Shown: positions 2,040 through 61,194 of the stretch, one piece after another
Layout of the letters: every line of letters starts with the position of its first letter
How positions within the stretch are numbered: the first letter of the stretch is position 1
Virus record (IMG/VR): IMGVR_UViG_3300042519_004024
Coordinates: 124,001 to 188,000 of that record
Reading direction: 5' to 3' (one strand)
Length of the DNA: 64,000 bases
Notes under the pieces: generated by a model
Told to the model about the DNA's origin: nothing
What the model saw: the letters and a program-made list of their open reading frames with translations, nothing else
Databases searched by the model: none
Position numbers and translations under genes: made by a program

Positions 2040-2321
2040 TTATTGAAATTCATATGGTACTCCATCCATAAATTCAAATAAATCTGAATTTTGGAATTGT
2101 TTATAGAATATTTCGTTGTCACAATACACACAACCATTATCATCTATAATTTTTACAACATAACTACCATATGTTTCATATATCGCAGGTAATGTAAATG
2201 TATATGGTATGGTAGATGTCGTATTTATATACTGACAAGTACCATAACAAGTGTCACAAACCCATATATCGTATGGTGATGTTCCTGATGTTACTGAATT
2301 TATAGTTACTATTGTTGCCAT
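2040..2321 (-). CDS. Small single-domain SprB/Ig-like virion protein (paralogue of 9009..9293 and 9295..9504)
   Basis: SGTSPYDIWVCD...YVVKIIDDNGC pattern and C-terminal FMDGxxYxFQ tail shared with 9009..9293. Confidence 0.7.
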   Translation of the reverse strand: MATIVTINSVTSGTSPYDIWVCDTCYGTCQYINTTSTIPYTFTLPAIYETYGSYVVKIIDDNGCVYCDNEIFYKQFQNSDLFEFMDGVPYEFQ

Positions 2322-2325
2322 AATT

Positions 2326-4422
2326 TTAACAGTTTCCGTTTGGTGTACATTTGAATGTTAACTTACCATTACCGTCAACCTCAAATATCTGAGATATTGC
2401 GTTACCACTCTGATTGATTGGTACTTTTATGTATGTTACACTCAAAGGTGTGGTTAATGAACTATCTTCGTAAGCATATACACCTGTTTGTATCGTGTTA
2501 ACATTAAACGATGTAAAGAAATTTGCCGCTACTCCAAAATTTGTAAGTTCACAAATAGGACAAGATAGTGAGAACTCTCCTGACGCTCTCCATTCTTTAT
2601 ATTTTGGTGTTGGTGTAGGTTCAGGCGTTAAACATTCTAAACATGTTGTATATGTTGTTGCGGTTGTCGCAGTAAAAGTATCTTGTGTTACAGAAATAAA
2701 TCCTGATGGTGGTGTATAACCAACATAGTTACCAATGTAATTATAACAATCACCTGTTGTTTTTAAGATATCTCCAACAATTACATTAATTGGTGGATAA
2801 GCGTTTTGAATTATCATTGTATTATTAGTACATGATGTGAATATAAATTGTGTTCCCATAGGATATGATGGTGGTATTGGTAATGCGCATTCAGTATCTC
2901 CCGTACAAGTTCCTCCTGAAACAATAGTTGTTGTTCCTGTTATACAACTAAATGATATTGTGTTTTCTTGTGCACAAATACCAAAAGAAGTATCACCTGT
3001 CAATACTATTGATTCTGAATTACCTGAACAACCTGTCCATGTAACTGTACATCCACTATTAGATGTGATAGTATAACAATAACATTGTGGTACAGGAGTA
3101 GGTGTCGGTGTTGGTGTTGGTGTCACACAAACAGAACATCCACTGTAAACGTCCAATACTTGTATTAAATTTCTATTACTAGATGCTGTAGTTGTTCCTA
3201 AATATGTTACACACTGTATTTGATTGGATGCGCTTCCGTATAAAAGTGCTAAGAATGTAGTTCCTGTACTAACAACGGAACCTGAATATGTTATCGGTTC
3301 TGTTATATAATAATGTTCACCCGTATCACAGTCTAATAAATCTTTAACAGACGAACAAACAAAACTTCCACTATCAACAACAAATGTTACCGTATCAGCA
3401 GATGGCGTTACAGGACAATATGATGGTGTAGGGGGTGGGGTTGGTGTTGGTGTTGGGGTTGTTCCACTAGTTGTTGTACTAATTGTTGCAGTAAACCCAC
3501 TACAAATATCAGGAGTCGGTGTTGGAGTTGGTGGCACACAAATACCATAATCTGAAGATAATATTCTAAAAGGTATTACCGTTGTTACGACATCAACCCA
3601 AGGATATGTTATACTACTTTCAGGATAATACGCCGGATTATCATTATACGCAATTAAAGTTGTTGTTGGTGTGTATGATTGTTCCCACCTAACAGTAATA
3701 CTATTCCAATAAACAATAGTATCAGTAGAAGTTGAGCAATCGTTATAAAATAAACCATAGTAAGGTTTTCCATTAATAAAACCAATATAATTTAAAGTAC
3801 ATTGCCATGGGTTAGTTGATAACAATTCATTATCCAAAGTAAAACACATATCAGGACCTGGTGTCGGTGTTGGTGTTGGTATGTCACATTCCAACAATAC
3901 GTCAAAATCTAAATCTGAACACGGATCTGTAGGAATTGGTGTTATTAAACAAGTACCTTCGTACATTACAGTCGTATCTAAATCTGGACAACTGTACGAT
4001 GTTGGGTTTTGTCCAAAGAAATCACAACTACCACCTAAACTATTAGATAAACACCAATTTGTTCCGTTAAAAAACATATATCCAGGAGTAGTTCCTCCTG
4101 TCCAATAATAATCACCCCCATAAGTACCTTCTAATGTGTAGGTACCATTATATCCACTATATGAATTAATTGGTATGGATATGCAATAGTTATTTTGACA
4201 ATATCCAGTACAAAGAGTATCATTACAATCGAGTACCAAAGTTGCGGTACCATCCATAAATACTGTCATCATTGATAAAGAACCTATGGTATAACACCCG
4301 TCGGGTATAACCGTATCACCAACAATATTAAAAACTAATCCAAGTGTTGTTGTATAACTCCAGTTAGGAACCCTAAAGCTAATACTACTATTTATACAAC
4401 TTTCTATTTGTACTGTTGCCAT
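2326..4422 (-). CDS. Cys-rich multidomain virion-associated protein with five Pro/Thr linkers
   Basis: 698 aa, about 39 Cys counted by hand, PTPTPTP-type linkers between domains; TATTTATA motif upstream. Confidence 0.7.
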   Translation of the reverse strand: MATVQIESCINSSISFRVPNWSYTTTLGLVFNIVGDTVIPDGCYTIGSLSMMTVFMDGTATLVLDCNDTLCTGYCQNNYCISIPINSYSGYNGTYTLEGTYGGDYYWTGGTTPGYMFFNGTNWCLSNSLGGSCDFFGQNPTSYSCPDLDTTVMYEGTCLITPIPTDPCSDLDFDVLLECDIPTPTPTPGPDMCFTLDNELLSTNPWQCTLNYIGFINGKPYYGLFYNDCSTSTDTIVYWNSITVRWEQSYTPTTTLIAYNDNPAYYPESSITYPWVDVVTTVIPFRILSSDYGICVPPTPTPTPDICSGFTATISTTTSGTTPTPTPTPPPTPSYCPVTPSADTVTFVVDSGSFVCSSVKDLLDCDTGEHYYITEPITYSGSVVSTGTTFLALLYGSASNQIQCVTYLGTTTASSNRNLIQVLDVYSGCSVCVTPTPTPTPTPVPQCYCYTITSNSGCTVTWTGCSGNSESIVLTGDTSFGICAQENTISFSCITGTTTIVSGGTCTGDTECALPIPPSYPMGTQFIFTSCTNNTMIIQNAYPPINVIVGDILKTTGDCYNYIGNYVGYTPPSGFISVTQDTFTATTATTYTTCLECLTPEPTPTPKYKEWRASGEFSLSCPICELTNFGVAANFFTSFNVNTIQTGVYAYEDSSLTTPLSVTYIKVPINQSGNAISQIFEVDGNGKLTFKCTPNGNC

Positions 4423-4440
4423 TAAATTATTACTTTATTA

Positions 4441-4448
4441 TATAAATA
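4441..4448 (-). promoter_or_regulatory. TATTTATA putative late-promoter motif
   Basis: 18 nt upstream of the ATG at 4422; member of a recurring motif family. Confidence 0.55.
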
Positions 4449-4484
4449 ATCAAAAGTTTATTTTATTTAAAATGATTTATAAAA

Positions 4485-5687
4485 TTATAGAGTTAAAGAA
4501 AAATCAATTCTATTTTTCCATTCACCATCTTTATTATTAACCCAATAAACCCATTTGTGTGGTTTTTCCGTAGTTTTTAAGTCTATTTTTAAATACTCCT
4601 GATATTTGTATAAATCTTGTCTATGTATAACATTCCCCATTTCATCTTCAACACCAATATAAATAAACTTAAAGTTATCAGTAAATGGGATATAAAGATT
4701 TAAATTATATGTTTTTTCAACTTTTTTATACCATTCAGTATTATCGTTTATTGGTGGAAATATTCCTTTAATTGTGTCTTGATGTAACTTTCTATTTTTA
4801 AAATTTATCCCGGCATAATCCTCATATTCTTTATGTGTTCTAACCGAACCTAATCCATATATTGTTAAATCAATATTATTATCTTCTTCTTGTAACATGT
4901 GTCTTAATCTACGTTTGGATTCATTATCCATTTCCCACCATTGTTTTTCAATAATACCATTGTTTTTATTTTCTTGATTAAAATCTGTCCAATGTTTTGT
5001 TCTACCTTCTCTTGTGTATTCGTGCCAAACAACAGTTTTATGTGGATGAAACAAATCATAACCTAAAGTGTATGATCTAATTGATAGACTAATTTCGTCA
5101 CCAGCAAAATAAATGTTTGGGTCGTACTTATATTCTTCACAATGTTTACCTAGTGTGAAAAAGAAATGTCCACTTACAAATCTAGCCGGTATTGGGGTTT
5201 CCAATGTTTGCCAATTTGGGATTGCGTGTGGTCTAAAAAGTATAGTACCACCTGGTGTGAAATTAGATGCAACCATCATATATGGTTCAACATTTAATAA
5301 TTGGTTATCTGATGGTCGGTACATCCCAGCATATGATGTGATGATTGGTTTTTCTGAACCTGTCATATTCATCATTTCAATCAATTCTATATCCCAATCT
5401 TGTAAAAATCTATGATGTGAATCTAACTGCATTGTATATTCTTCACCATCCCACAATTTTTGGATTTCTGAACGAGCCCAACAAAGTCCTTTACTTTCTG
5501 TCCAATGATAATCTAAAATTTTAAATCTCTCATCGTCTGTAAATTCTTCCATTGACTCAGTTTCATCTCTTTGCCAACAAACACCAAATGTTAAATTTTC
5601 AGGGTGTTTTGCTTTATTAATACAATCTCTAATTGTTGGTAAAAGTTCGGGATCCCTATAAGATGCGATTTGTACAAATATTTTCAT
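4485..5687 (-). CDS. GT60-like UDP-GlcNAc:polypeptide GlcNAc-transferase (GlcNAc/PF11397-like, Skp1 Gnt1/mucin-type initiating family)
   Basis: N-terminal IFVQIASYRDPEL..TI, SKGLCWARSEIQKLWDGEEYTMQLDSHHRF (DxH metal motif), GHFFF and YFAGDEISLSIRSYTLGYDLFHP match the family pattern as I recall it. Confidence 0.8.
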   Translation of the reverse strand: MKIFVQIASYRDPELLPTIRDCINKAKHPENLTFGVCWQRDETESMEEFTDDERFKILDYHWTESKGLCWARSEIQKLWDGEEYTMQLDSHHRFLQDWDIELIEMMNMTGSEKPIITSYAGMYRPSDNQLLNVEPYMMVASNFTPGGTILFRPHAIPNWQTLETPIPARFVSGHFFFTLGKHCEEYKYDPNIYFAGDEISLSIRSYTLGYDLFHPHKTVVWHEYTREGRTKHWTDFNQENKNNGIIEKQWWEMDNESKRRLRHMLQEEDNNIDLTIYGLGSVRTHKEYEDYAGINFKNRKLHQDTIKGIFPPINDNTEWYKKVEKTYNLNLYIPFTDNFKFIYIGVEDEMGNVIHRQDLYKYQEYLKIDLKTTEKPHKWVYWVNNKDGEWKNRIDFSLTL

Positions 5688-5732
5688 AATTAAAATATAT
5701 TCTAAAATATTTTAAAGTGAATTTAATATATC

Positions 5733-6953
5733 TTATAAATAATATAATACTTCTGCAGTTCCTGCAAATGTTGCGTTTGCACCTAATGGTGTTATACATA
5801 TCCACATTTCGTCAAGTGTTCCGTTAACATTAGAACCAACCCTAATTTGATTATCATCAATTTTTAATGTGGTAAGTGCTGATGTTCCTGATTCACCAAT
5901 AAGTGATGACATAATGTGTCCGTTTGTTGTAACAGTTGCAGTTGTTGTTCCAGTAAATAAACTATACTGAAATGGTGAGTTCGGTATATCCACCCAAGTT
6001 GGTGTTGTAGATATTGTTGGGTTATATTCAACTGTAACCAAATAGTTATCATTTGATGTATTTAAAATACTTAAACTACTATATTGTGATGTAACTGACT
6101 TATAACTTTGTTTAAGCCTATAACCAATATACGGATATTTTGTATCTGAAGTTTCTAAGGTCGTTGTTGTTTGGTGTTGTATACCTACTGTCGAATAAAG
6201 TCCGTTTAACGCTCCTTCGGTTGATACTTGACTACATAACATATCAAAGTATCCTGAACCAACACCTACTTGTCTTATTTCATACCTAATTGGTTGATTT
6301 GGTGATGACATGTAAACGGTAGGTATATTATTTGCCGAAGTATATTCTAAAAAATAAAATGTTTGACCCGATAATACCATTCCAAACCTCATCCTACCAA
6401 CACCTAACCATTGATAATCTACTGTCATTAGATTTGTGTTACTCCAATCAAAATTGTTTACGTCAAAGTCTGTATTATTCCAAGTTGTTGTATCGGCACT
6501 ATAAGTACAAGAACCACTTAAATAAATGTTAAATGTTATCGCACTTGTTACACCATTACTTTCTAAAAAGAACCCGTCAAATACCGAATTGTACGTGGAT
6601 GCCGTTGTTGATGTGAAACATCCAATTCGTTTAATTATATTTGTTTCTATTTGGAAGTTTGAAAAACTGCCTTCAAATAGTTGACTTTTACCTGGTTGAT
6701 AAATTGGGTGTGTTTTAGTTTGTCTAACAACCAAATCGTTATTTGCCGATGTTGACATTCTAACTCTCGCATATTGTTGGTTAAATACTGATGTTGCAGT
6801 ACCTGCGGTTACTTCATTGACCTGTAAAGGATTTTTATCGTAAACGTGTTTAATGTCTAATAAATTTTGAACCGCTGCGGTCCTTAATCTACCGAAAGCG
6901 TCCATATTTGGTCCGTCCGCGTACTTTATTGAGTTGTTAAAAATAAATGACAT
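5733..6953 (-). CDS. Hypothetical virion protein, beta-rich (possible lectin-like fold)
   Basis: 406 aa; N-terminal DAFGRLR motif typical of aquatic phage structural proteins; located in the fibre cluster. Confidence 0.5.
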   Translation of the reverse strand: MSFIFNNSIKYADGPNMDAFGRLRTAAVQNLLDIKHVYDKNPLQVNEVTAGTATSVFNQQYARVRMSTSANNDLVVRQTKTHPIYQPGKSQLFEGSFSNFQIETNIIKRIGCFTSTTASTYNSVFDGFFLESNGVTSAITFNIYLSGSCTYSADTTTWNNTDFDVNNFDWSNTNLMTVDYQWLGVGRMRFGMVLSGQTFYFLEYTSANNIPTVYMSSPNQPIRYEIRQVGVGSGYFDMLCSQVSTEGALNGLYSTVGIQHQTTTTLETSDTKYPYIGYRLKQSYKSVTSQYSSLSILNTSNDNYLVTVEYNPTISTTPTWVDIPNSPFQYSLFTGTTTATVTTNGHIMSSLIGESGTSALTTLKIDDNQIRVGSNVNGTLDEMWICITPLGANATFAGTAEVLYYL

Positions 6954-6957
6954 AATA

Positions 6958-8979
6958 TTAAATTAAATACCAATTTCCGTTTCTCACCATAATGGTGAGA
7001 GACATATAGTTTATATTCATATCAACATATGAATTTCCGTCAATCAAACCCGATGCCGGTGTTAATCTTATTCTAAAAAACCCGGAAGTTCCGGCTTCGT
7101 CTTTTATGACTAAATAATACCCGTCTCTTGACGTTGTTGTTGGTAATGTTAAATCAACATTTGATGATCCACTAACACCCCAATATGATTTATCCCAAGT
7201 TAAGGTTTGTGATGATGTTATCGCGCTTGTTACAAATACATTGATGGGTAAATTTTGATAGGTTGTTGCAGAAATTGTGTTTGCGGTTAAACCATCAGTA
7301 AATGAAGTAGACCCTGTTACAGTACCACCTGTAAATCCATTACTTAACGAACCATCACCCATAACATATTTTGATGATGTACCGCCTTGTGTAATAAATT
7401 TATCTGCATTTATGTATTGAAAATAATCTATTGAATTAGTACTAGTTCCTGTAAGCGTAGAACCTGGTTTATCATATATGGTGTTAATAATTGTGTAAAT
7501 ACCTGCAACACTTATAGGTGCTACATTATTCCCCGCCGTAACAAGCACTTGACTATTTAGCAATGTTAATGTAGTCAAAGATCCCGTTATCGTTATACCA
7601 TTACCACCTAAAGCAGTAACAATACAATCAACTATTGCTAAGTTACCTGCACTAGCTGATGGTGTTACTACACTATTACATCCCTTTATAATAACTTGTG
7701 CTGAGGCATTGCTTACTGATACTCCAACATTTTTATTACCGTTGATAATAGTGATGCCAGCACCAGAAATTTGAATACCTAAAGTACATTGCAGTTCTGA
7801 GTTAATAATTTCAACATAACCACTAGATGATTTGGTTACTTGAGTATCAATAGTACAGTTGCTTATATAAGCTTGAGCTGTTCCACTAATGACAAGGTTA
7901 CTCATCTTCAAACCTGAAATGCGAGTACCAGAACCTAATGTACCAATAGTTAATGTACCTGATAATAGAGTATTTGCTCCTGTTAACTCTGATGTTGAAA
8001 TTGTCGTATTAGTGTTAGCGACCGTAACATTTTCTGAATAAGTACCAGGGTGGATAATTATTGTTTTACGAGACCCAGTAAGTAAGGTTAATGCCTTAGT
8101 AATGGTCGCAACAGGATTAAGTAAATCACCATTACCTGTAGTATCATTTCCATCTATTTGACTTACGTGTATCTCATATTGAAAATTTGACGAAACATTA
8201 TAATATGTTGTTGCCGAAATTGTGTTTGCGGTTAATCCACCATCAATTTTAGTATTACCACTTACATGTAGTTTTTGTGTTGGTGTGGTTGTTCCAATAC
8301 CAACATAACCTCTTGTCGCACCTAAACCTTGTATGTGTATATCAGGTGTTGTCCCATTAGCGGTTTGTCCTGCATAAAATCTAATGTAATCCTCAGTTCC
8401 TGTGCCAGGTGGGTTTAAAAAATTAAAACCATATGTTTCATTACCAGCATAAAAGAATGCGTCACCAACTTTACCATATCCAGGATACGAGACATCATTC
8501 CACGCCCTCATACCTAATTCAAATCCCGCAATTGGTTTTGTTAAATATGGTGTAATTGCGACAGAAATTCTTGGTACGTTTGTATTCCCACTTAAAAGTA
8601 ACCTACCTCCAACACTTTCAGAATCATAATATAATCTACTTTGGATACCTCTAGCGTCAAAAACATATTGTGGTGTGCTTGTATTAATACCTATTCTTTT
8701 ATTTAAAATATCTAAAGTAATTCCGCTTGTTGATCCAAAATACACATCACCCTCATCTAACGGATTTATGTTTAATGGGGAACATGAATGAATATTTGAG
8801 ACATAAAAATCGGTAAAACAATATCCCGAAATAGAATCAAATACTTGTGATATTTTTGCCTTATATGATGAACCATCAGGATCTTGTGAGGTATCTCCTG
8901 TTATTACAATATGTATTAAATCGTCTGTAGTTACACCTGACGCTAATACTCTTTCTGTAAGTCTTTGATAAACTGCCAT
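6958..8979 (-). CDS. Modular tail fibre/spike: shared N-terminal anchor, GIGT motifs, putative right-handed beta-helix, small C-terminal domain
   Basis: IGINTSTPQYVFD and YVGIGTTTPTQKLHVSGN motifs; HVSQIDGNDTTGNG...NPVATITKAL...IIIHPGTYSENV is a typical beta-helix cap; ends LTLP...IKDEAG...IDG...GNWYLI. Confidence 0.7.
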   Translation of the reverse strand: MAVYQRLTERVLASGVTTDDLIHIVITGDTSQDPDGSSYKAKISQVFDSISGYCFTDFYVSNIHSCSPLNINPLDEGDVYFGSTSGITLDILNKRIGINTSTPQYVFDARGIQSRLYYDSESVGGRLLLSGNTNVPRISVAITPYLTKPIAGFELGMRAWNDVSYPGYGKVGDAFFYAGNETYGFNFLNPPGTGTEDYIRFYAGQTANGTTPDIHIQGLGATRGYVGIGTTTPTQKLHVSGNTKIDGGLTANTISATTYYNVSSNFQYEIHVSQIDGNDTTGNGDLLNPVATITKALTLLTGSRKTIIIHPGTYSENVTVANTNTTISTSELTGANTLLSGTLTIGTLGSGTRISGLKMSNLVISGTAQAYISNCTIDTQVTKSSSGYVEIINSELQCTLGIQISGAGITIINGNKNVGVSVSNASAQVIIKGCNSVVTPSASAGNLAIVDCIVTALGGNGITITGSLTTLTLLNSQVLVTAGNNVAPISVAGIYTIINTIYDKPGSTLTGTSTNSIDYFQYINADKFITQGGTSSKYVMGDGSLSNGFTGGTVTGSTSFTDGLTANTISATTYQNLPINVFVTSAITSSQTLTWDKSYWGVSGSSNVDLTLPTTTSRDGYYLVIKDEAGTSGFFRIRLTPASGLIDGNSYVDMNINYMSLTIMVRNGNWYLI

Positions 8980-9008: not shown

Positions 9009-9293
9009 TTATTGGAATAAATAATTATTACCGTCCATAAAAGTGAAGTAATTGGCGTCTTGATAAATTTTTTGTCCACATATTAAGAAGTTATTTGCAA
9101 TACACCCATTAGTATCGATTATTTTAACATAAAGAATTTGTTCATAAGGAAAATAATCATCGGTATCAAATATCACACTTGGTGGAATAAATGTTGTTCC
9201 TGAAACATAAAAACAAGACGTGTTAGTTGCATCACATATATAAACGTCATATGGTGCCTGCCCACTTGTTACTCCTGTTATTTCTATATTCAT
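9009..9293 (-). CDS. Small single-domain SprB/Ig-like virion protein (paralogue of 2040..2321)
   Basis: SGQAPYDVYICD...LYVKIIDTNGC...FMDGNNYLFQ. Confidence 0.7.
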   Translation of the reverse strand: MNIEITGVTSGQAPYDVYICDATNTSCFYVSGTTFIPPSVIFDTDDYFPYEQILYVKIIDTNGCIANNFLICGQKIYQDANYFTFMDGNNYLFQ

Positions 9294-9294
9294 T

Positions 9295-9504
9295 TTATGT
9301 ACAATTTACTAATTCAAAATACTCACATCCTGTTGAATCGATAGTTTTAACCATTAATGTATTCGCACTTGAATAGAAGGGGTTAAGTGTATAAGTTCCT
9401 CCCGTTGTACTTATTAGATAACAGTTATTTCCATATTCATCACATAGATAAATACTTAATGGTGGTGTTCCACCTGTTGTTCCTGATATAGTAATAACAC
9501 TCAT
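9295..9504 (-). CDS. Small SprB/Ig-like protein, third paralogue lacking the FMDG tail
   Basis: GGTPPLSIYLCD...LMVKTIDSTGC; tightly coupled to its neighbours. Confidence 0.65.
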   Translation of the reverse strand: MSVITISGTTGGTPPLSIYLCDEYGNNCYLISTTGGTYTLNPFYSSANTLMVKTIDSTGCEYFELVNCT

Positions 9505-11981
9505 TATTGATAAACTAATATGAATCCATCTTCAGTCATCATAAAATAACTGTCTTCGGTTAATATTATAAATGTGTCTCCACAGTCATCTTGACAAGTC
9601 ACGTCATAATCAATTTTTAATCTTAGGTTAAAAATACAATCAGCCAATGGATCTTCATCACCATTACATTTAGAAACAATTTCAAGAGTGTTTGTCAATA
9701 AATCAACAGTATAACTTTGTATGTTTGGTATACTACTTAAAATACCTTCGATTGTTGATTGCCAAAGGGTGTCTTGTGGAATATCATTTAACGTAGTTGC
9801 AGTATAGAAAGGCACAGTGTATGTAGTATCACCGGATTGACAATCGGCGTACACTAAGAAATCACCATTTTCTGTTGTAATCGTAAATACGTCTTCAGTT
9901 AAAATAAAACACGTATCTCCCGATCCAGGACAATCGATTTCTATTTCACAACTAAACACCGCACCACTAAAACTACAACCTGAGTATCCCGAAATGATAT
10001 CAACATATCCTTCATTTAACATCTCTGAAAGTCCTCTTTTTGTCCCAACAGTTGTGGTAAAAGTACTATTACAAACATTAAATAGTTGGTAGGATGTTGG
10101 TGCGATTCCGTTACATATTATTGTAAAATATTGTATATCGTAACAACCGTTACTATCTGTTATTTCGACATAATAATTACCAGCAGATAATCCCGTAACT
10201 GTTGAACCTGTTTGTCCATTACTCCAATTATATGTGAATGTAGGTTCTCCCTGATATATAACAACCTCGGCAAATCCATCATTACCGTTTACACAATCAA
10301 CTTTTTGTATTGATGTAACTAATTGTCCGCTAGTTGTTATTGTAAATCCTGTCGATACTGCACATCCGACACTATCTGTAACCGTTATTGTATAGTTACC
10401 AGGTAATAAGTTATTATATGTTACTGCAGTTGTTGTTGTATCAATTAAAGTGTCACCATTACTTAACACATAATCTAATACACCACTATAACCACTATAC
10501 ACCTCAATATATGCAACTCCGTTTGAAACCCCACAAGTTGATCCGGTAGTTGTTGCACTTACCGTAAATTTTTGAGTAGAATTTATATTTATTGTTGTTG
10601 TATATTCACAGGCAGTTCCTGAACCTGAAATCGTTAAAACATAAGTATCATTTTGTAAATTTGTAAAATTATTAGTCTGATTTAAACTAGTGTTTTGAAT
10701 AACTTGATTTGAATTTTGTCCCGATAGTGTATAAGTATAGTATCCACCCAAACCAGCAATCTGTACGTCAATCTCACCATTATTTTGATTACAGTCTGAG
10801 TTGGTGACAATTATGTCGACTACATTAAATCCTCCTACGGGACTTAGAAACCCGCTTAATGTTGTTTCACAAAAATTAGCATCTCTTACAACTACTTGGT
10901 AGGTTCCTGCAGCTAAATTTGTTAATGTAAACGTGTTTGAAAGTGTGTATCCAACCTGCGCAGTTGATGCGGAATAATAAAAAGGTGCGGTTCCTCCTGT
11001 TAAAATATATGTTAAACTACCATCCGAAGCAAAACAAGAAGGTGTGGACGCACTTAATAATCCAATCCCTAATGGTGCCGCGTTTCCAACATATTCACTT
11101 TTTGTTAGTTCACATCCATTCGCATCAGTCACAGTACAAGTATATACTCCTTGTGTTAGTCCTGTTATTAATTGTGTTGTTTCACCATTACTCCATAAAT
11201 ACGTATAAGGCCCCGTACCCGTTAAACCTGTTACCGCTAACTTACCTTTATCAATAACACAATTTGAGGTGTTAACAACCCAAAACCCATAATCTAAAGA
11301 AGTACTTGCAGATATTATAGCATTTTCAGTGTTAGCAGTGGTACCACCTGAATCAAAAACAGTAGCATAATAAATACCACTAGGTAAACCGTTAAAATCG
11401 TATGGTAAAGTTCCTGTTGTTTCTACATCGTAAGGAACACCGTCTTGATAAAGAAGAATAGTGTATGGTGCACCTGAAGATGTTGCACTTATAGTCAAAA
11501 ATCCTGTATCTTGACCACAAGTAGTGCCCGATGCAGTAACCACATTCGCCTCAAAACATCCTGTTACATTAACATTAATATATAATTCATTATTTTGTAA
11601 ATTAAGAGTATCATTTAATCTGAACACATAAGTACCACCCGTTAATCCTGTAAATGTTATAGGTGAACTACTTGTTTGAGCGGTTAAAGTTCCCGGAATA
11701 ATATTATCAATTGTGTATGGTGCAACACCACCATATGAAGTGAAAGTTACACTACCTGTTGCTGCGGAGCAAACCCCCGTAACTTGGAATCCGTAACTAA
11801 GTGGTCCTGATGTACATGTTTGAGTACAAGTCACCCCTGTAGCAATATAAACTCCTCTTGCCGAACCGGAAAATGATTCATCTATACATATACTTTCACC
11901 AAGTGAAACACCGAATTGGTATAATCCACAACAATCAATATATTCATAAACACCATCGGTTAAACCTGATATACAAGCCAT
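9504..11981 (-). CDS. SprB-repeat adhesin-like virion protein
   Basis: Repeated GxxPY(T/Y)YxWSNGxTxxxITGLxxGxYxxTVTDxNGC units, e.g. GPYTYLWSNGETTQLITGLTQGVYTCTVTDANGC and PTFTYNWSNGQTGSTVTGLSAGNYYVEITDSNGC. Confidence 0.8.
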   Translation of the reverse strand: MACISGLTDGVYEYIDCCGLYQFGVSLGESICIDESFSGSARGVYIATGVTCTQTCTSGPLSYGFQVTGVCSAATGSVTFTSYGGVAPYTIDNIIPGTLTAQTSSSPITFTGLTGGTYVFRLNDTLNLQNNELYINVNVTGCFEANVVTASGTTCGQDTGFLTISATSSGAPYTILLYQDGVPYDVETTGTLPYDFNGLPSGIYYATVFDSGGTTANTENAIISASTSLDYGFWVVNTSNCVIDKGKLAVTGLTGTGPYTYLWSNGETTQLITGLTQGVYTCTVTDANGCELTKSEYVGNAAPLGIGLLSASTPSCFASDGSLTYILTGGTAPFYYSASTAQVGYTLSNTFTLTNLAAGTYQVVVRDANFCETTLSGFLSPVGGFNVVDIIVTNSDCNQNNGEIDVQIAGLGGYYTYTLSGQNSNQVIQNTSLNQTNNFTNLQNDTYVLTISGSGTACEYTTTININSTQKFTVSATTTGSTCGVSNGVAYIEVYSGYSGVLDYVLSNGDTLIDTTTTAVTYNNLLPGNYTITVTDSVGCAVSTGFTITTSGQLVTSIQKVDCVNGNDGFAEVVIYQGEPTFTYNWSNGQTGSTVTGLSAGNYYVEITDSNGCYDIQYFTIICNGIAPTSYQLFNVCNSTFTTTVGTKRGLSEMLNEGYVDIISGYSGCSFSGAVFSCEIEIDCPGSGDTCFILTEDVFTITTENGDFLVYADCQSGDTTYTVPFYTATTLNDIPQDTLWQSTIEGILSSIPNIQSYTVDLLTNTLEIVSKCNGDEDPLADCIFNLRLKIDYDVTCQDDCGDTFIILTEDSYFMMTEDGFILVYQ

Positions 11982-35142: not shown

Positions 35143-38100
35143 TTAATTAGGATTAAGTACAAAATATTCGTAATATTCTGTAAAAACAACAACGTAATCA
35201 TTATAAGTATTGATAACACCACTACTTACATTATTAACAACTTCATTTTTAATTTCTTCTGCAGTTAGTGGTGGCGGTCCAAAAGCCACAGGAGTGTCCC
35301 AAGTAGTTAAATACAATTGTGATAACGCTTTACCATATTGTTTATATTCATTTGTATCGGGGTTTATAGTTTTTAGTGATTCTATAAGTGGTACCATAGA
35401 TTGATAGAATGATACCATAAAACTACTAGATGTAGTATTTTCAGTAAAACTAGCAAATACTCTGGATGTTCCAGCAACATCAACACATGTTTGTTCTTTT
35501 AGGTAAGTGTCCAAACTTCCATTGTGTTTAGTCTCTGTTGATATCTCGTAAAAATTATTATTAATACTATTCAATTCTGTTGTTACCGGATCGTAAGAAT
35601 TTAATGGTCTTGTTAACGCAATACCTAAAAGTAATGTCCTTAATCTACTATCATTTGTTACTGATTTTATTATTGGTATAATTTCCTCTAAAGAGAATGG
35701 TGTTCGTTTAACTTCAACAAATGGTAATGTTGTGTATTTAGTTATTTCTCTACACTTATCTAAACCTGTTTTTGTTACCGTTATTGTTGGGTCAGTATTA
35801 ACAAGTGTTTCTTTTTTTATTTCCTCATCAGTTTTTGTTTTCTTAATTTTTTCTTTATATGATTGTAGAATTTTTTGATTTACATTAATCAACAAATTAT
35901 CAACATTTGGTAAACTATATTTTGGGATTCTTGTTCCTTTAAATTTAGTGGTAAATCCGTTTTCTGAAATGTTATGATCAACTTCATAAATCCAATATGG
36001 ACCATAAAATAATGGTACGTGCCTTAAAACAAAATACATTGTTGGTTGTATCATAGCATTACCCATAGACTCGACCCCACAACTATAAGACCTAGATTTA
36101 TAAATACTATACATCGATACTGATTGTTGGGCAACTTTATCTCCAGACACCGAACCACCAATATCCGCAAACACTTTAAAAGACTCTGAAGTATTTTTCA
36201 TTTCAGACATATCTAAATCTAAATTTTTAAACATGTTCTGATTTTGTATACCAAAATCAACACTAAACCCAACTACTTTGTTTGTTTTAGAGTAATCCCT
36301 ATTAGGGTCAGAAATTCTTAATGGGTTGTCAGGCATTCTTAAATCAAAACTATCATCATCAAATCTAATAAAAGAGTTTTCTTTTGGTTTTGGGTATTCT
36401 GAAGGATTACCCATGTAAAGACATAAAAACTTAGGACTTGATTTTGTATAATCCACTTCTAGATATGTTCCAAACATTGAGTTGGGTATTTCAATATCTA
36501 TTGGTTGTCCGTTTTTAACTGCCGATTGTATACCATAAAAATTTATATATGCAGGCATTGGGAAAAACATAAACTGATTATCACCTAATATGTTGCTAAC
36601 TAATGTCATCAAATTCATATCAGGGTTGTTTGTTGTGTCCATTCTTTTTATAACTTTATCTATGTCAACAACGTATGTATCACCAATATCACTATTAGCC
36701 CTATCCATAAATAAAAAGTCTTCAAACAAGGTTACATATTTTAAATCAGACCCTGCAATCCATTTATCATTAAACGCCTTTAATGTATTATAAAGGGTTA
36801 ATTTACCAACATCTCCAGTTACGGCATTTGTTGTATTATTATTTACAGTAATATTACTTAAGTTTTTATTTAAATTTAAAAAAGTTTGGTTTAATATTTT
36901 TTCTTGTATTGATTTTTGATCAGTTAAATACTGATTTATTAATGTTGTAAACGTTTGTTTATTTAAATTAGAATCTTCTAATTTTTTCTGCGAATATAAT
37001 CTTATTAATGGGTACGTCAGTATTATATTGTCAGATGTAAATTCAATATCATTATCAATAAAAAAATCTGCAACCGTCGATTTTGGTGTTCCCGGTAATG
37101 GTATAGTTGTTTGTGGTTGGGTTACAGGTAATTGTTGTTGTACTGTTTGTGTTTGTTGTGGTTGTGGTTGTTGTAAACAATTTGAAGTTAATATCTCATT
37201 AGTAACACAAACAACCGCAGCATTAGGTTCACCAACATAATTATCATCATCAAAATCTAACGTATATGTTTTAATCGCATTTGCAGATTGATTTTGATTA
37301 ACAGGATTAAAAGTTGAGGTATTTGCAATTTTTCTTGCACAAAACTGTACTCCGTTAGGAATATTAAATTCTTCAACTTCAAGATAGTAAACTTCTCCTT
37401 CTAAATATGTTGTACCTGTACCTACAACGTTTGAAATAACATTATTTGGTATTACAACATTGAATATTTCATTTGAATTGCAACAACTTTGAAAAGTATA
37501 ATGTGTTGATGGTGGTATAGTTACATTTGTAGTGGATGTAGGTGGTACCACAGTTGTTGCCAAAGGTGTAGCCGTTGGCGGTGTTGATGGGAATACGGGA
37601 CTTGGTTGCCCTGGATAGTCAACTCCGGCAATCGATGAAAACCCTAAATATGTTCTTAATGTATTCCAAGCATCTTGGTTTTGAGTAACACTTTGTAGTA
37701 ACGTAACATTTGTACCGTCACCAGGTAATGTTCCTTTTACGTATGGTTTAAATTCGTATTTATCAAATTCAGGGACAAACTCTTTAAGATTAGAAAACGA
37801 ATTAAATAACCTTCTGTCAAAATTTCCTGGATTTCCTAATTTTAAAACACAATCAAAATTTAAAAATTCTTTTAAAGATGAGGTAAATGTTAATATCTGT
37901 TTTTGTCCTAATGTTTTACCATCAACGTCCTCGTTAACAAAAGTAATACCTGTTTTATTAACTAAAAATAAATTAAGTATTTGACTGTATAATCTTTTTT
38001 GTGCGGAATTCGCAATTTTATTACTTGACGTATAAGATGGATCAATTATCTCGTCTTTTAAAATTAAATTTTTAGAAAGTGGCTTATAATTACAAAACCC

Positions 38101-41100
38101 AATAAATTGTTCTTCAAACTTATCAAGGATTTCCGGTGTAAAAATTGCAAATATTTCTTCAATAGAAGAATACTCGGATTGTGCGGATTTTAAATCAAAA
38201 GGCGTTTGTTCGTCAGTATTTAATTTTATAGCCTTTAAATACTGTGTAGGTGCCGGTTTTACTATTAATGAATTATCAAAATATCCAAAATGCGATGATG
38301 CCCATAAACTTCTTACAGAACCATTGTAAACTGATTTATTATTAAATAATTCTTTTGTTAATATGTTATTTGGATTAACAGATTCATATATTGACTGATC
38401 TATTGGGATACCCCCCATAGATGGGAACAACATCATAAATTGTTGTGTTGTTGCACTTAATTCCGCATAACTATAGTAGTTTGTTTTTTGTAAAGATCTA
38501 TTTGGGTTTGATGTATCAAATCCAAAGTTTAGATAAGTGTTTGATTGATTATTTTTACCTAACCTAAAATTATTTTGATTATATATGTTTTGAAAATTAG
38601 TTGTCGTATAACCAGTTAATAAATCTTTACCTTCAATAAAATTATAAACCGCATTAATTACTTTAGGGTAAAATCCCGTACCTATATAGTCTTTAGATTG
38701 TAATGAAGGTAATGGGAAATTTTCAGTTTTTTGTAAAAGTACAGTTTGATTGTTACCACTATAATCAGGAATTATGTATTGTAATGTGGATGCTGAAGTT
38801 GCCGGATCATACGCACCAATATAGTCAAAATTTTTCCAAACAGAATCTAAAATATCAACCCCATCATTTACAAATTTTTTATATCTATACCAAATAGAAC
38901 CATATTTTAATACCCAAGCATATGGTACTTGATGTATTGATGAATATTTTTTTAGTGTGGACGCCAAATAATCTAAATCAGTATATGAACCATTATCAAT
39001 AGATTTAATTTTTTCTTTTGTTGTGATTAATGGTAATGAATTTAAATATAAGTAACCTAAAGTGGTAAATGCATTATCTGTGTTTGTTTTATTATCCTCA
39101 ACACCTTTAATAAGTGCATTTACAAAATATGGTGTGTTTAATAATGAAGTTGTCTGTATTTGTGTACCAACATTACCAGAATATGAATTACCGTAATTGA
39201 TATAACTTTCTGTTGGGTAAAAATCTTTTATTTTTCTATCTTGATAGAAACTCTTAAGTATTAATTGATTGTTTATTGGTGCATTTAACGTTGATACGTA
39301 AGGTTGGTTTGCGGTTTCTAAAATCCTAAAATCACTTAAAAGAGATAACTTTTGGTATTTTTCAGTTTCATTTATTCTTGCAATAGTTTTTTTATCATCT
39401 AAATAAATAAAGGTTTTTGTTGTATCGTTGAATTGTTCTAAACTACTAACAGTATTACCGTTAGATGTGTTACCACTAATCCAATTTATATCAGTAAAAG
39501 GGTATGTATCTAAAAAATTCATTTTAGATGATTCGGTACTCTCTAAATATTCTTTTAGATTATTTGCCAATTCTAAATCAGAAGATATTTTAATGGATCT
39601 ATTAGAAATTGTATCAATACTATATATGTCGTTAGTAGTTTTTAATAAATTATCAATATATTCTGTCTTATATTTACTTCTAATATATGTTTGCCAACTT
39701 TCACCATTCCCGTCGTTTGATATTTTTTTAAGGTATGCGATAAAACTATTATAATCAAACTTATAATTTTTTAATATTTGGTTTAGTTCTATACTATTAC
39801 CTACTGAGTTTTCAATATTTTTACTTTCAATATTACCATAAAACTTATCTATTTGTTTTTTTGATATTTCATCATTAATAAATTTAGTATAAAATGACGA
39901 TAGGTATGTTCTTTCAAATAATTCATAAAAAAATGGTATAGCCCCTAAATCTTGATACGGAGTTGTTTTAAATGGAAATTCTATAGCATTTGCCGAAACA
40001 TATTTACTATAATCGGAAGGATTATTATAAACATTAGAACTAACCGGTTTTGACGTTTCAGTAGTACCTTTTAAGTATGCCTCAACAAATCCTATTTCAG
40101 GCCATAATCTATAATCATACCCTTTTGTTTGTTGTATTACTTTAGCATCACCAGGATATTGTATAGTATAAACTTCTCTACCGTCTTTTTGTTTTTCTTT
40201 AACAAAATATAACGGCCAAGGGTAAACCACATTATCTTTATTTAATTCACCGCTAGATGTTTGCAAAGTTCTCAAGGCATCCACTGAAAAGTTTTTTTCG
40301 GGTGGTATTACCGCAAGTAGTCTTGATGGGTCATTCCTAACGTCCCACGCCGATTCGTGAACTTCTTCCATTAACCTATAAAATGCATCTGCACCTGCAA
40401 AAATAATTGCAAAAACATTCCTTATTGTTGGTTTAAACCCTAACCCACCTTCACTTGGATTTTTTAAAGCCCTGTCCGCCAATACTTGAGATAAAATGTT
40501 TTCTATCTCTTCTTCATTAGTTTGTAGTGATTTTTCAGCATCGTCTATATCATCCAAAAAACTATTTGGTACATAAGTTGAGTCTGCAACAATTTTATCA
40601 CCAAAAACAAAATAGGTTACATTATCTTCAACCCACTCACCTTTTTCATTTAAAACCTTTTCTTTTAGTAGTTTATTTTTATCTTCATCTAATTTGAATT
40701 TTTCAAATTCCTTTATTCCATTTTCAGTAGATAAGTCTACAGGTTTGTTAAACCTATAAAAAAAAGTATTTTTTAAATCTTCATCATTATTAATCCAAGA
40801 CTCAAAATCTAATTTTTTTAACACATCACTTTTATCTTTTATTTTTAATGGTATTTCTCTTTTACCTCCTTTACCAAAAGTTGCGTTATCGTTTAATTTT
40901 TTAATGTAATATGTTATTCTTTCATTAATTTTTGTTTTGTAGTCTTCTTTTGTCTGATCTTGTATATCTTTTTTAAATGGATAATAAATTAATTTTTGAT
41001 TTCCACTTACATAAAAACTACTTTTATCTAAAAACTTATCTAATGAATTAGTGTACACACTTTTTCTTAACCCCGCTAATGAATCTCTATAATCTTGTAT

Positions 41101-42105: not shown

Positions 42106-42412
42106 AATAAAAAATATGTGTATCCAATGCAGATTTGTAGTCTTGCAGTGCCGCAACTAGCGGAAAAGGTATAACTAATATTGTTCCATCAGGTATATTT
42201 GTTTCCAAACCACCATAAAGCGGATTTGCCATCATAATTAACCAACCAAAATAAGGTGCTCCGTATTTTTCATAACTTATCTTATCCAATCTACTTTGAT
42301 TTTTTCTATACACATATCTTTGATCCGAAGACCTTAGTGGTAAGTTTAAGAATGGTACTACCGTTTGTTTACCATTTATTAAAAAGTTTTGGTATCTATC
42401 GTAATATTGCAT
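42095..42412 (-). CDS. LysM-like baseplate protein (T4 gp53/tail X-like)
   Basis: SRLDKISYEKYGAPYFGWLIMMANP...IPDGTILVIP. Confidence 0.75.
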   Translation of the reverse strand: MQYYDRYQNFLINGKQTVVPFLNLPLRSSDQRYVYRKNQSRLDKISYEKYGAPYFGWLIMMANPLYGGLETNIPDGTILVIPFPLVAALQDYKSALDTHIFYYGR

Positions 42413-42414
42413 TA

Positions 42415-45400
42415 TTAATTAAATGTTTTTTTCAAATTAAATTTATTCCATCCTGAATTTTGATCTGACCACAGTTCTTTTAAGTTGTTATCATTTGGTG
42501 GTATGATTGGACTTTGTGTTTCATAATTAAGTATTCTAGTTTTACTTTTATTATATGGATTATATGTGTTATATTTGTTTTTATAAAAATTGTCATTAAA
42601 ACTTTTAAATCTATCATCCACAATTTTCTTTGATTTGTTATAACTATCTACTAACCCTTCGTCTTTTACATAGAACGATTCGCCAAAATAAAATTTCCAA
42701 TTTTCTTTAACTTGTGTATCTTCATTTTTTAATGCCTCGTCAACAATGCTATTACTAAACCCTTCGGCATCAATCGCAATATCTTTACCAAATAACATGA
42801 AAAATCTATTTTCGGCGGGTGATGTAAGTGAAGGGTCACTTTCAATGTATGTATTAAACACAAATTGATCGTTATACTCATCTGTAGTTCCTGAGGCTAT
42901 TATTTTATCTTGATAAAGTTTATCATAATATTCATTTAAGTCTGAACGTACTTTAAGAAAGTCTTGTACTAATTCTGAATATGTATCCGTTACACCAACA
43001 CTTGATGGGTCAACCCCAGTCCCTCCGCTTAAACTATATATAACGACATCACCATTTTTAGCGATGTAACCATCATTTTTACTTGTTACAAAATTTAACT
43101 TATCTATTGTAAAAATTAATTTAAGTTCTTCGTTTGCAATAGTTGAGTTACAATTTTCAAGTAACGCTAACATGTCGTTACCTTTTTTTTCAATTAAATC
43201 TTTAATTCGTTTTTTAATTTTTCTAATGTTTGCGTCCGTAAAATTTTGGTATTGTACTTCAGGTAATAATGGACAACTCCCGTCGTCAACATCTTTTTTC
43301 GCCTTTTCTACTAACAATTTAATTTTATCTTGTATCGTATCTGTCTTACCGTAAATGTTAGCATTATTAGATGTGTTACCGGTTAAGTAATCAAATAAAC
43401 CTTCAGTATATTTTCTATCTTTAGTAGACATTAAAAGTCCCCCTAATAAGAAATTGTCGTTTATTTTTTGTAAATTACTTATAACGGTATCCGCATATGA
43501 TTTTGTACCATCAGCCAATGTTTTCATTATTTCTTCATATGAAATAGTACCATAAGCCTTTTGAGTATTTAAATCATAACTATTAGTTTTTATAAGCCCT
43601 ATAGTATCTCCAGCATCATTTGTTCTTTGTTTATTTGGATCGTCTTGTATACCAAGTTGGTTTTTAATGTCCGCTAAAATTTCTGCATCGTACTGTGATG
43701 TAACATCTTCAGTTACATCTGCCCTTTCATCATACATTTCAGTATTTGCATAAAAATTAAATGAAAGCGCATTTTGTAATTTAGCAACAGGTCCCGCTAA
43801 TCCATGTCCACCAATAAAATTAAATGAAATACTTACATCAGCAATCATTGGTTGAACTCCAATACCTTCAGGGTTAAGGTCAAACCTACCATCTTCGTAT
43901 TTTATACTTAAAGAATCAATTACTATTTTTGTATGGAAAAAGTCACCGATTCTTAAAACACAAACAGGTGGTGCACCAAATACACTATTTGTTACATCAT
44001 TATACACTAACGTAAAGTTTTCCCCATCTTTAGAAACCGTAGGTATTGTATCGCCCGGACGCATACATTGTTGTAAAAACGTTAGTCTAGAATTTAAACC
44101 TTCAGGTGTTATAGAGTGGAAAACAGGATGAAAATGTTTTAATTTACTTTTTAACCCGTCGTATATCATAGGGTCACTTTGTTTAACTAATTCAAAATAG
44201 TTACATTCTGTTAATAATTTTCTTGCAAGTCTTTTTGTTAAATCTGATCTCACTACTGTGGTTTTTTTAACTATAGGGTCTTGTTTTTGTCTTATTGTTG
44301 TATAACCAGCGGGATCAGCTTTAATTGTTTCACCATTAGCTGTGGTTGTTGTTTCACTTCCTGGGTTTTCTTCAGGTTCTGTAAACGTTCTACCCTCTAA
44401 TGGTTGTGATTCCTCACTACTTGGTGGCGGGGTGTCTATAGTTTCTGCAGGAGGAGCTTCGTGTTTAACGTCTAAAATTCTTACTCTTCTACAAGCCATA
44501 GCATTAACCGACACAGTTCCCTCATTACTATTACTCTTATACTCTTTATTACAATTAATAAATTTATATTTTGGATCCAAAATACTTGTAGTTTCACCTT
44601 TAGGTTCTTGTTTTACTAATAAATTTTTATTATATTCATTTTTTAATTTTACGCCGTCGTACTCAAAATTTAAAATATATTGTAGAGCAGCATCAATTCT
44701 TCTTTTTGAAAGGGTGACGTTATACGCATCATCAGTAACTGCAGAAGCTGAAGATAATAGTGTGAATGATATTTTACCTCCCTGTTTTATTGCAATACAA
44801 ACTTGGGTTAAAAATGTTTTTATTTCTTCAAATTCAGATTTTATATAATTAAAAAATTCAGATATTGATTCATCTCTTGTGTCAATATAAGAATCTAAAT
44901 ATTTTTCTTTTAGCTCATCACTACCCGATAAAATAAAATTAGTATAGTCAACATATGTTCCGTCACCATATTTTATAATTTTATCTCTAGCACCTCCAAA
45001 GTTTCTTGTTCCGTCACTACCACCTGTTGTTAAATATTTTTCTTCTAAAGCTAAATAATCTGCCAACCATTTTTCATAAGATTTTGACGCATAAATTCTA
45101 GTCGTGTTAGGATCTGGAAAGTCATTATGGAAAAAGAATAACGGTTCTTTAAAATTATAATCCTCAACTTCCGGTGGTTCAGTAAACACTTTTCCTCCTG
45201 TACCTGTAGGTGTTGGTGTGGGTGTTGGTGATGTCGTTGGTGGTAGTGTTACCGGTGGAATAGTATCTTCATCAATAAAATTGTCTACAACCTCGTTAGG
45301 TAAATTCTCAACAACAGTCACCACATCTTCAGGATATATTATTTCTTCCATTACTTGGAACACGTCGTTTGGTGTAAACATTGGGTATTTTTTTACCAAA

Positions 45401-60463: not shown

Positions 60464-60471
60464 TATTTATA
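60464..60471 (+). promoter_or_regulatory. TATTTATA motif on the plus strand
   Basis: 3 nt upstream of the ATG at 60475. Confidence 0.5.
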
Positions 60472-60474
60472 GTT

Positions 60475-61194
60475 ATGATATTTAAAAACTTTAATCAAAA
60501 AATAACCCTTTTAGAAACAAAATTAAAAACACATTCGTTTTCAAATGAATTGTTAATTACTGAAATTAAAAAAATTTCAATAGAAAAATTACCTTATGAG
60601 TTTGATGATTTAGATATGTTTATTGACGGTGAAACTATGAGAACTCACTATAATAAACATTACAAAGGTTACGTTGAAAAATTAAATTCTGAATTAGAAA
60701 AAATAAAAGGTAAAGATTTAGATTTAGAAGAGATTGTAAGTAGTATCACAAAATTTAACACGAAAGTTAGAAATAACGGTGGTGGAGCATTTAACCACGC
60801 ACTATTTTGGAAAATGTTAACACCTAAAAAAACAAAATTAGAAAATCCTTTATTATATAAAATAGAATCAACATTTGGTTCATTTGAAAAATTTAAACAA
60901 AAATTTGAAGAGGAAGCAAAATCAAGATTCGGTTCTGGTTGGGTTTGGTTAGTAATTACTAAAGCAAATAGATTAAAAATTATAACCACCGCAAATCAAG
61001 ATAATCCATTAATGTTAAAAGGTAGTAATAAAGCGTACCCACTATTAGGATTGGATTTATGGGAACATGCATATTATTTAAAATATAAAAACGAAAGAGA
61101 TAGATACATCCATAATTTTTGGAAAGTAGTTAATTGGGATTTTGTTTCCGATTTATATTCAACACAAGTAAAATTAAATAAAGTTAATCAGTAA
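60475..61194 (+). CDS. sodA: Mn/Fe superoxide dismutase (Mn-type signature) with N-terminal extension
   Basis: KLPY...TMRTHYNKH..Y, RNNGGGAFNHALFW, FGSGWVWL, TANQDNP, LDLWEHAYY; all four metal ligands present. Confidence 0.92.
   Translation: MIFKNFNQKITLLETKLKTHSFSNELLITEIKKISIEKLPYEFDDLDMFIDGETMRTHYNKHYKGYVEKLNSELEKIKGKDLDLEEIVSSITKFNTKVRNNGGGAFNHALFWKMLTPKKTKLENPLLYKIESTFGSFEKFKQKFEEEAKSRFGSGWVWLVITKANRLKIITTANQDNPLMLKGSNKAYPLLGLDLWEHAYYLKYKNERDRYIHNFWKVVNWDFVSDLYSTQVKLNKVNQ

Follow-up and report, generated by a model that had tools for sequence, protein, structure and literature searches.

The stretch of DNA analysed here (the window) is 64 kb of the ~214 kb (213,924 bp) IMG/VR record IMGVR_UViG_3300042519_004024, from an uncultured freshwater phage. 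Within a block of structural genes it carries a gene for a 400-amino-acid (aa) glycosyltransferase (GT), followed by a gene for a 698-aa protein with five linkers of alternating proline and threonine, written (PT)n below. An earlier reading of the letters (the original prediction) had proposed that the phage uses this enzyme to glycosylate its own Pro/Thr linkers. As judged from family scans of its open reading frames (ORFs), the phage has a contractile tail, whose sheath, tube, baseplate hub and baseplate wedge genes in the window are T4-like; replication genes are interspersed among these (ribonucleotide reductase, DnaB-like helicase, UvsX-like recombinase, single-stranded DNA-binding protein and a DNA polymerase fragment). 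The central features of the locus are the following.

4485..5687 (-): GT60-like (PF11397) GT-A glycosyltransferase, 400 aa, predicted soluble (Pfam, PHROG, AlphaFold2 model, Foldseek, conserved residues)
4423..4484 (-): AT-rich 62-bp spacer from the GT stop to the PT-protein start, no terminator-like site within
2326..4422 (-): Cys-rich multidomain protein of 698 aa, bearing the five (PT)n linkers; candidate acceptor without a family match
3859..3879 (-): PT linker 1 (PTPTPTP)
3511..3534 (-): PT linker 2 (PPTPTPTP)
3421..3462 (-): PT linker 3 (TTPTPTPTPPPTPS)
3094..3123 (-): PT linker 4 (TPTPTPTPTP)
2605..2619 (-): PT linker 5 (PTPTP, inside TPEPTPTPK)

The 698-aa ORF lies on the same strand as the GT gene, 62 bp downstream of it, and contains 5.6% Cys and 16.6% Thr. 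All five tracts were located, and the description of a GT directly upstream of, and co-oriented with, a protein bearing five (PT)n linkers is therefore correct. The protein had no match in deposited phages. Of 34 ORFs in the window with a length of 150 aa or more, only 2 have at least 6 P or T residues in a row. By homology and sequence, both members of a mucin-type pair, namely a predicted initiating N-acetylhexosamine (HexNAc) transferase and a dense Thr/Pro tract, are present and adjacent.

A GT60-like enzyme

The GT ORF begins MKIFVQIASYRDPELL and holds the motif QLDSHHRF. It matched the Pfam profile PF11397, 'Glycosyltransferase (GlcNAc)', which is CAZy family GT60, with an E value of 2.8e-67 (228.1 bits against a cut-off of 21), and phrog_24687, 'glycosyltransferase', with an E value of 1.2e-102. 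Residues D89, S90, H91, R93, E198 and H222 are invariant in an alignment of 49 phage and bacterial homologues that are 38-67% identical to the window protein. The AlphaFold2 model built on this alignment (predicted local distance difference test, pLDDT, 95.3; predicted template modelling score, pTM, 0.85) shows a GT-A (Rossmann-like beta/alpha) core, with a catalytic domain at about residues 1-300 that includes D89-S90-H91 and H222, and a separate all-beta domain at the C-terminus, at about residues 325-397. Foldseek against the PDB returned GT27 polypeptide N-acetylgalactosamine (GalNAc) transferases for all of the top 50 matches of the model, with E values down to 1.3e-12 and TM ~0.5; they include GalNAc-T1, T2, T4, T7, T10 and T12, Drosophila PGANT9 and Toxoplasma GalNAc-T3. 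Identity to these GT27 structures is only 12-15%, and a sequence search against the PDB gave no match, the fold search alone being informative.

Because sequence, fold and motif all agree, membership of PF11397/GT60 and the DxH motif (D89 and H91), both put forward in the original prediction, are upheld. We conclude that the 400-aa protein is a GT-A enzyme of this family, predicted to be soluble and metal-dependent (DxH). The family is a sister, in protists and bacteria, to GT27, with which animals initiate mucin glycans. Its solubility had also been claimed earlier, and the model is consistent with this. The protein lacks an N-terminal hydrophobic segment and looks cytoplasmic, with no signal anchor, since strand 1 of the GT-A core already begins at residue 3.

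GT60 has been described as a protist sister family of GT27 without the ricin-like domain. Its characterised members are polypeptide alpha-N-acetylglucosamine (alpha-GlcNAc) transferases, of which Golgi forms initiate mucin-type O-glycans, and a hydroxyproline of Skp1 is modified by a form that is soluble in the cytoplasm (PMC8724618). The Trypanosoma cruzi enzyme is Mn2+-dependent, with uridine diphosphate GlcNAc (UDP-GlcNAc) as donor and KPPT8KPP as acceptor (PMC3769586). The phage GT resembles Dictyostelium Gnt1 and GntB and T. cruzi TcOGNT-2 in its profile match, its GT-A fold, its DxH motif with a distal His and its lack of a ricin-type lectin domain. No ricin domain was found in it by Pfam scan, and a different small beta domain stands at the C-terminus instead. 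Gnt1 is moreover soluble without a signal anchor, as predicted for the phage GT, and the known Thr/Pro-rich, mucin-like acceptors of GT60 enzymes resemble the (PT)n linkers next to it. The phage GT differs from the characterised enzymes in being encoded by a phage, in belonging to a large bacterial/viral branch, some members of which lie in lipopolysaccharide (LPS)-like or replication contexts, and in its extra all-beta C-terminal domain of ~75 residues; its donor and acceptor are putative.

The GT27 enzymes of animals and apicomplexans, which provide the nearest solved structures, have the same Mn-binding DxH...H arrangement and initiate dense O-glycosylation on Thr/Ser/Pro-rich tracts; in contrast to them, the phage GT has neither a ricin B lectin domain nor a membrane anchor. 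PF11397 counts 6080 proteins at E at most 1e-5 in a collection clustered at 90% identity, and 4394 clusters at 50% identity with E at most 1e-3. Among the latter are fusion proteins with 3-5 tandem GT60 domains, up to 2461 aa long. Automatically annotated BFVD entries named 'Glycosyltransferase, GlcNAc' come from uncultured Caudovirales, Megaviridae and Pandoravirus. A tree of 131 GTs places verrucomicrobial GTs (52-56% identity) nearest to the window clade among cellular sequences. No characterised member of the bacterial/viral branch was found, and the family is essentially unstudied outside eukaryotes.

The Skp1 enzyme raises an alternative for the acceptor residue, namely that the proline of the PT tracts is first hydroxylated by a phage or host 2-oxoglutarate (2OG) oxygenase and that the GT then acts on hydroxyproline, in the mode of Gnt1. 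Gnt1 is indeed the soluble cytoplasmic form among characterised GT60 enzymes and modifies hydroxyproline (PMC8724618), and the tracts are half proline. However, no 2OG-Fe(II) oxygenase, and in particular no prolyl hydroxylase, was present among the window ORFs scanned, and none was noticed among the scanned neighbours of relatives, a weak argument as the window covers 64 of ~214 kb. The Skp1 pathway (PhyA/Gnt1/PgtA) has a single acceptor, Pro143, whereas the candidate acceptors of the phage GTs are repeats that link domains of many unrelated proteins. Family scans of the window ORFs gave no match to Skp1, a protein of eukaryotes. We regard a hydroxyproline acceptor as quite improbable.

Association with PT tracts in other loci

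Close relatives were taken as 46 IMG/VR loci whose GTs are 55-100% identical to that of the window (100% in L014). A PT-tract ORF, with a tract of at least 8 residues, lies within 3 kb of the GT in 41 of them. The usual partner is a homologue of the 698-aa protein, encoded downstream of the GT, with tracts of 12-26 residues; L034, L036, L043 and, at a distance of ~8 kb, L025/L042 have non-homologous architectures with other PT-rich proteins, whose tracts reach ~60 residues. In homologues of the 698-aa protein that are ~90% identical to it, the first long PT tract measures 22 (L002), 16 (L003) and 23 (L008) residues, against 7-13 in the window, which suggests that repeat length changes rapidly. 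In a more distant set of 74 further viral loci (GTs at 33-76% identity), a PT ORF was found in 38, at a distance of at most 3 kb in 31 and of at most 500 bp in 21.

De-duplication at 80% GT identity left 61 viral loci for an enrichment test. At gene ranks ±1-2 from the GT, 30 of the 233 ORFs had a PT tract, compared with 9 of 482 at ranks of 5 or more (odds ratio 7.8, p 6e-9). When their tracts were masked, the 34 PT neighbours fell into 16 families unrelated by BLAST, and at least 26 changes of the PT-adjacent state were needed on the tree of 131 GTs. GT and PT protein are therefore not one inherited gene pair. A reverse test was also made, in which 120 viral loci chosen solely for (CCNACN)8, coding for (PT)8, were compared with 120 chosen for (CCNRAR)8, coding for P[KE] repeats, with a similar amount of DNA. 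A GT60 homologue was present in 9 of the 120 (CCNACN)8 loci and in none of the 120 controls (p 0.003); for any GT of the reference set, the counts were 11 of 120 and 0 of 120.

Sister phages were gathered through a conserved protein of 737 aa that is encoded downstream of the cluster, which served as anchor for 80 loci (45-100% identity). The slot directly upstream of their PT protein holds GT60 alone, as in the window, or GT60 accompanied by a 265-aa protein, by a GT34-like protein or by an HtrL/YibB-like protein, and in some loci it holds no recognisable GT. Elsewhere the slot is occupied, without GT60, by HtrL_YibB (PF09612, 2e-15), by a double-domain GT34 protein (PF05637, 2.7e-22) or by a 195-aa ORF resembling GT29 sialyltransferases (PF00777, 3e-22; best PDB match ST3Gal-I, 2e-10). 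This GT29-like ORF (L326:5222-5809, minus strand; also in L327, L330 and L349) stands beside the PT protein in loci without GT60 and is small for a complete catalytic domain; no report of a phage GT29 came up in a literature search. NCBIfam had no model for the GT, nor for the partners other than YibB.

De-duplication of the sister loci gave 54 clusters. At least 24 PT residues were present in 41 of the 42 clusters with any recognised GT (median 52.5), against 4 of the 12 without one (median 8), the two groups being different by Fisher's test (4e-6) and by the Mann-Whitney test (4e-4). Co-occurrence of GT and PT tracts across related genomes, a check proposed with the original prediction, was thus positive in the local enrichment, partner-diversity, reverse and sister-phage tests, and it extends to GT29-, GT34- and HtrL-like enzymes that replace GT60. 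The best single reason to think that GT and PT protein cooperate is that one GT family replaces another at a fixed slot beside the latter.

Two of the accompanying gene sets deserve description. The EDGS and YEDDVW motifs are invariant in the family of the 265-aa neighbour. A profile search, and hhalign comparison with the PDB, with GT60 and with the GT8-like pair, gave nothing for this family; a structural model (pLDDT 72) showed a GT6-like fold (ABO transferases, alpha-1,3-galactosyltransferase, BoGT6a) with an E value of ~1e-7, and we assign the protein, with moderate confidence, to GT6-like enzymes. In phage L043 (9995-12440), GT60 is followed by a GT32-like DXD protein and then by a sulfotransferase (Sulfotransfer_2). 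The identical three-gene order, followed by a GT25 gene, is found in Verrucomicrobium sp. BvORR034 (L051:9998-13688), which suggests exchange of the cassette and possibly the making of sulfated glycans. No elongating or capping enzyme is present in the window cassette; such candidates occur in relatives (GT6-like, GT34-like, GT32-like with sulfotransferase, GT29-like).

Candidate acceptors and proposed mechanism

We conclude that the GT most likely glycosylates the (PT)n linkers of fibre-module proteins, a reading to which homology and the comparative association lend a probability somewhat above one half. It would be made together with the fibre-module genes, probably late in infection, as judged from the narrow gaps of 45 and 62 bp, the common strand, the lack of a terminator-like site in the GT/PT spacer and, in relatives, a GT stop that overlaps the start of the GT gene behind it. 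Scans for promoters and terminators near the GT gave the same counts as shuffled sequences or were uninformative, and no clear coding-strand site for the T4 late-promoter motif TATAAATA was seen upstream of it; it is therefore gene packing that points to late co-transcription. In the host cytoplasm, the enzyme would transfer HexNAc, probably alpha-GlcNAc taken from the host UDP-GlcNAc pool, to Thr of the alternating linkers. It would act mainly on the 698-aa product of the gene directly downstream, possibly also on other PT-bearing tail proteins, and the modification would precede virion assembly. The glycosylated linkers could then form short mucin-like stalks, extended and resistant to proteases.

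The window cassette would supply the initiating enzyme only, and the GTs found in the same slot of sister phages would extend or replace the glycan. As this slot holds other GTs in addition to, or instead of, GT60, the cassette looks like a swappable module for virion-surface glycans. More tentatively, a widespread group of large uncultured phages, as sampled in IMG/VR contigs, may build eukaryote-like mucin-type O-glycans on (PT)n fibre stalks by means of a hot-swappable glyco-cassette, in which GT60 would initiate with HexNAc on Thr, GT6-, GT34-, GT32- or HtrL-like enzymes would extend, and a GT29-like enzyme or a sulfotransferase would cap in some phages. We consider this broader scheme possible, but clearly less probable than glycosylation of the linkers as such. 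If it is true, the virion glycan would differ from one sister phage to another in the manner of receptor-binding proteins, and might serve to shield against proteases, to adhere or to evade recognition by the host.

Several observations weigh against glycosylation of the linkers. The PT tracts of the window are short, 5-14 residues compared with 20-60 in relatives. Among the distant viral GT60 loci, roughly one in two lacks a PT ORF within 10 kb. Conversely, the 4 PT-rich clusters among the 12 GT-less ones have no recognised GT within 10 kb, and in two of these four the locus ends inside a giant ORF. Relatedness is only partly corrected for in the GT/PT statistics, and GT and PT tracts could merely share a hypervariable fibre or accessory island. 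Neither the sequence search nor the fold search of the PDB returned a GT60 structure, and acceptor specificity is therefore unreadable from the model. Finally, as described below, some homologues of the GT lie in settings of another kind.

A first alternative is that the GT does modify phage or virion proteins, at sites other than PT tracts, such as the 406-aa structural protein or folded fibre domains, the tracts themselves being unmodified flexible linkers. The GT gene sits between the gene for this virion structural protein and that for the PT protein, some PT-rich clusters lack a recognised GT, and mycobacteriophage glycans are reported on capsid and tail-tube C-termini and not on repeats (cited in PMC12619734). 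We nevertheless find this alternative unlikely, given that the association tracks the PT tract itself over 16 unrelated neighbour families and in loci selected for PT-coding DNA, and that characterised GT60 and GT27 enzymes use Thr/Pro-rich tracts.

In Acidobacteriaceae, homologues of the GT adjoin a GT9 heptosyltransferase, an HldE-like kinase/adenylyltransferase and DUF4254 (for instance L064:7247-11960, Tunturiibacter lichenicola chromosome), and part of the family may therefore use LPS-type acceptors. This favours a second alternative, in which the phage GT acts on a host envelope glycan or lipid-linked precursor (LPS core, capsule, cell wall) and remodels the cell surface, for example in superinfection block or receptor masking, its place in the fibre island reflecting a host-interaction function only. 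A GT9 gene also lies 7 kb from the homologue of phage XacN1, the Verrucomicrobium gene belongs to a multi-GT cluster that includes GT25, an LPS-type family, and HtrL/YibB, which can take the place of GT60, is a family of rfa-cluster proteins. On the other hand, the nearest structural relatives of the GT are exclusively polypeptide-modifying, all characterised GT60 enzymes modify protein (PMC8724618), and the enrichment of alternating PT beside the GT is left unexplained by an envelope acceptor, which we judge to be improbable, to about the same degree as modification at non-PT sites.

The only cultured phages in which a GT60 homologue was found are XacN1, Xoo-sp13, CM1 and RAS14, at 34-37% identity (37.5% for XacN1). 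In the Xanthomonas jumbo phages XacN1 and Xoo-sp13, the homologue adjoins genes for DNA polymerase, RNaseH, a NUDIX protein and a carbamoyltransferase, and the 17 kb examined about the XacN1 homologue contained no PT tract. At least 2 glycoproteins have been detected in XacN1 virions, and the authors suggested phage GTs as their makers (PMC5852040), which gives the proposed virion glycosylation an indirect precedent in a cultured phage. The replication-type neighbourhood of these homologues would fit glycosylation of modified bases of phage DNA, as by the T4 glucosyltransferases, in defence against restriction, and phage GTs often modify DNA (PMC12619734, PMC13326640). However, the window GT lies inside the fibre module, with the nearest replication gene ~22 kb away, the window ORFs that were scanned included no base-hydroxymethylase, and the fold is of the polypeptide HexNAc-transferase type. 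The replacing families GT29 and GT34 are not known to modify DNA. In addition, GT60 and PF11397 are both absent from a paper on phage GTs that glycosylate DNA (PMC13326640). A DNA acceptor is the least probable of the alternatives, and very improbable in itself.

Glycosylation of the Pro/Thr linkers by the phage, as originally predicted, is thus favoured by the comparative association in several co-occurrence tests, while GlcNAc as the sugar, Thr as the acceptor, the presence of the PT proteins in the virion and any stiffening, shielding or adhesive effect are predictions. The GT60-PT link is not universal for the family, as XacN1, Xoo-sp13 and the Acidobacteria illustrate. In addition, three contigs binned as bacterial metagenome-assembled genomes (MAGs) have a GT60 gene directly adjoining a large PT-rich ORF: L124 (Planctomycetaceae TMED10), L123 and L112 (both Sphingomonas). 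In L123 the stop of the PT ORF overlaps the GT start. Such contigs may represent sequence of phages or prophages that binning has placed in MAGs.

Known systems and other features of the window

To our knowledge and in the literature searched, phage-encoded virion glycosylation has been demonstrated only in actinobacteriophages, with other enzymes and sites. In that system, GT genes also lie among structural genes, and virion decoration in the cytoplasm before assembly was proposed as it is here (Freeman et al. 2023, via PMC12619734). The GT families and host type are different, the acceptors there are capsid and tail-tube C-termini and not internal (PT)n fibre linkers, and the modification was shown by experiment whereas it is predicted in the present case. 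Giant viruses such as chlorovirus PBCV-1, with its Vp54 protein, and mimivirus, with its fibrils, decorate virion surface proteins by virus-encoded, cytoplasmic pathways of several GTs (PMC4691112), and GT60-like folds occur in Megaviridae and Pandoravirus; these viruses, however, infect eukaryotes and have other acceptor motifs and a different set of GTs.

Secreted glycoside hydrolases of bacteria (for example the 'PT box' of Cellulomonas fimi) and of fungi have alternating PT linkers that are O-glycosylated and join folded domains, where glycosylation guards against proteolysis and extends the linker. Those linkers are modified by the secretory or periplasmic machinery of the host, whereas a dedicated cytoplasmic enzyme is proposed for the phage. 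The literature searched yielded no paper connecting GT60/PF11397 with PT repeats of phages, and none on GT cassettes that are interchangeable at a fibre locus of a phage. If the proposed role is correct, it would add an acceptor motif (alternating Pro-Thr) and an initiating family (GT60) to phage virion glycosylation, together with evidence for exchange of whole GT cassettes at one phage fibre locus, and it would give a first functional handle on the large uncharacterised bacterial/viral branch of PF11397. The enzyme, being small and soluble, could also serve to decorate PT linkers in an O-GlcNAc-type manner in E. coli, and the case suggests that many GTs counted as 'auxiliary' in viromes act on the virion and not on host metabolism.

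The remaining genes of the fibre module, and two further Pro/Thr tracts, are as follows.

5733..6953 (-): virion structural protein, 406 aa, directly upstream of the GT, 45-bp gap (phrog_1645, E 1.7e-51)
6958..8979 (-): tail protein of the fibre module, 673 aa (phrog_4577, E 4.7e-7)
9504..11981 (-): SprB-repeat adhesin-like protein, 825 aa (PF13573, E 2.6e-14)
2040..2321 (-): small Cys-containing protein, 93 aa, conserved downstream of the PT protein
45205..45243 (-): short (PT)4 tract SPTPTPTPTG in the 2129-aa tail-module ORF 42415-48804, possible further acceptor
37528..37590 (-): P/T/S-rich non-alternating stretch in the 2337-aa ORF 35143-42156, weak candidate acceptor

The last two were part of the original prediction, which had assigned them to core baseplate proteins. 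Both stretches are where it had placed them, and only that at 45205-45243 is a true (PT)n run. The name 'core baseplate protein' is unsupported, as family scans gave no informative match for the two giant ORFs of the tail/baseplate region. The statement that the GT is the only enzyme gene inside the fibre cluster could not be confirmed either, the 673-aa tail protein having no assignable fold. Homologues of the 825-aa SprB-repeat protein in relatives bear PT tracts. Small Cys-containing proteins of 69-94 aa are dotted over the fibre cluster (2040-2321, 9009-9293 and 9295-9504, all on the minus strand) and are conserved in relatives, in some of which they are fused to PT tracts in forms of 170-190 aa. 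An AT-rich, imperfect tandem repeat of 11 bp in ~4.8 copies (TTAAAATATT) runs across the spacer upstream of the GT start, at 5690-5741, and is perhaps plain AT-rich intergenic sequence.

The phage had been called a T4-like Bacteroidota phage. The tail and baseplate genes agree with the first half of this name; the second half could not be confirmed. Megablast against deposited phages gave no near-identity DNA match for the window, and assignment of a host through isolated relatives failed, the sheath being only ~30% identical to those of the closest isolates (Microcystis, T4-like and Flavobacterium phages). The SprB repeats of the adhesin-like neighbour are at best a hint towards Bacteroidota. 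A paper on freshwater 'moraphages' reports core GTs in large Bacteroidota phages, with no connection to PT repeats; the window could not be assigned to that lineage. Finally, the phage also codes for an Fe/Mn superoxide dismutase, at 60460-61194 on the plus strand (PF02777, 9e-41; PF00081, 2.5e-22).

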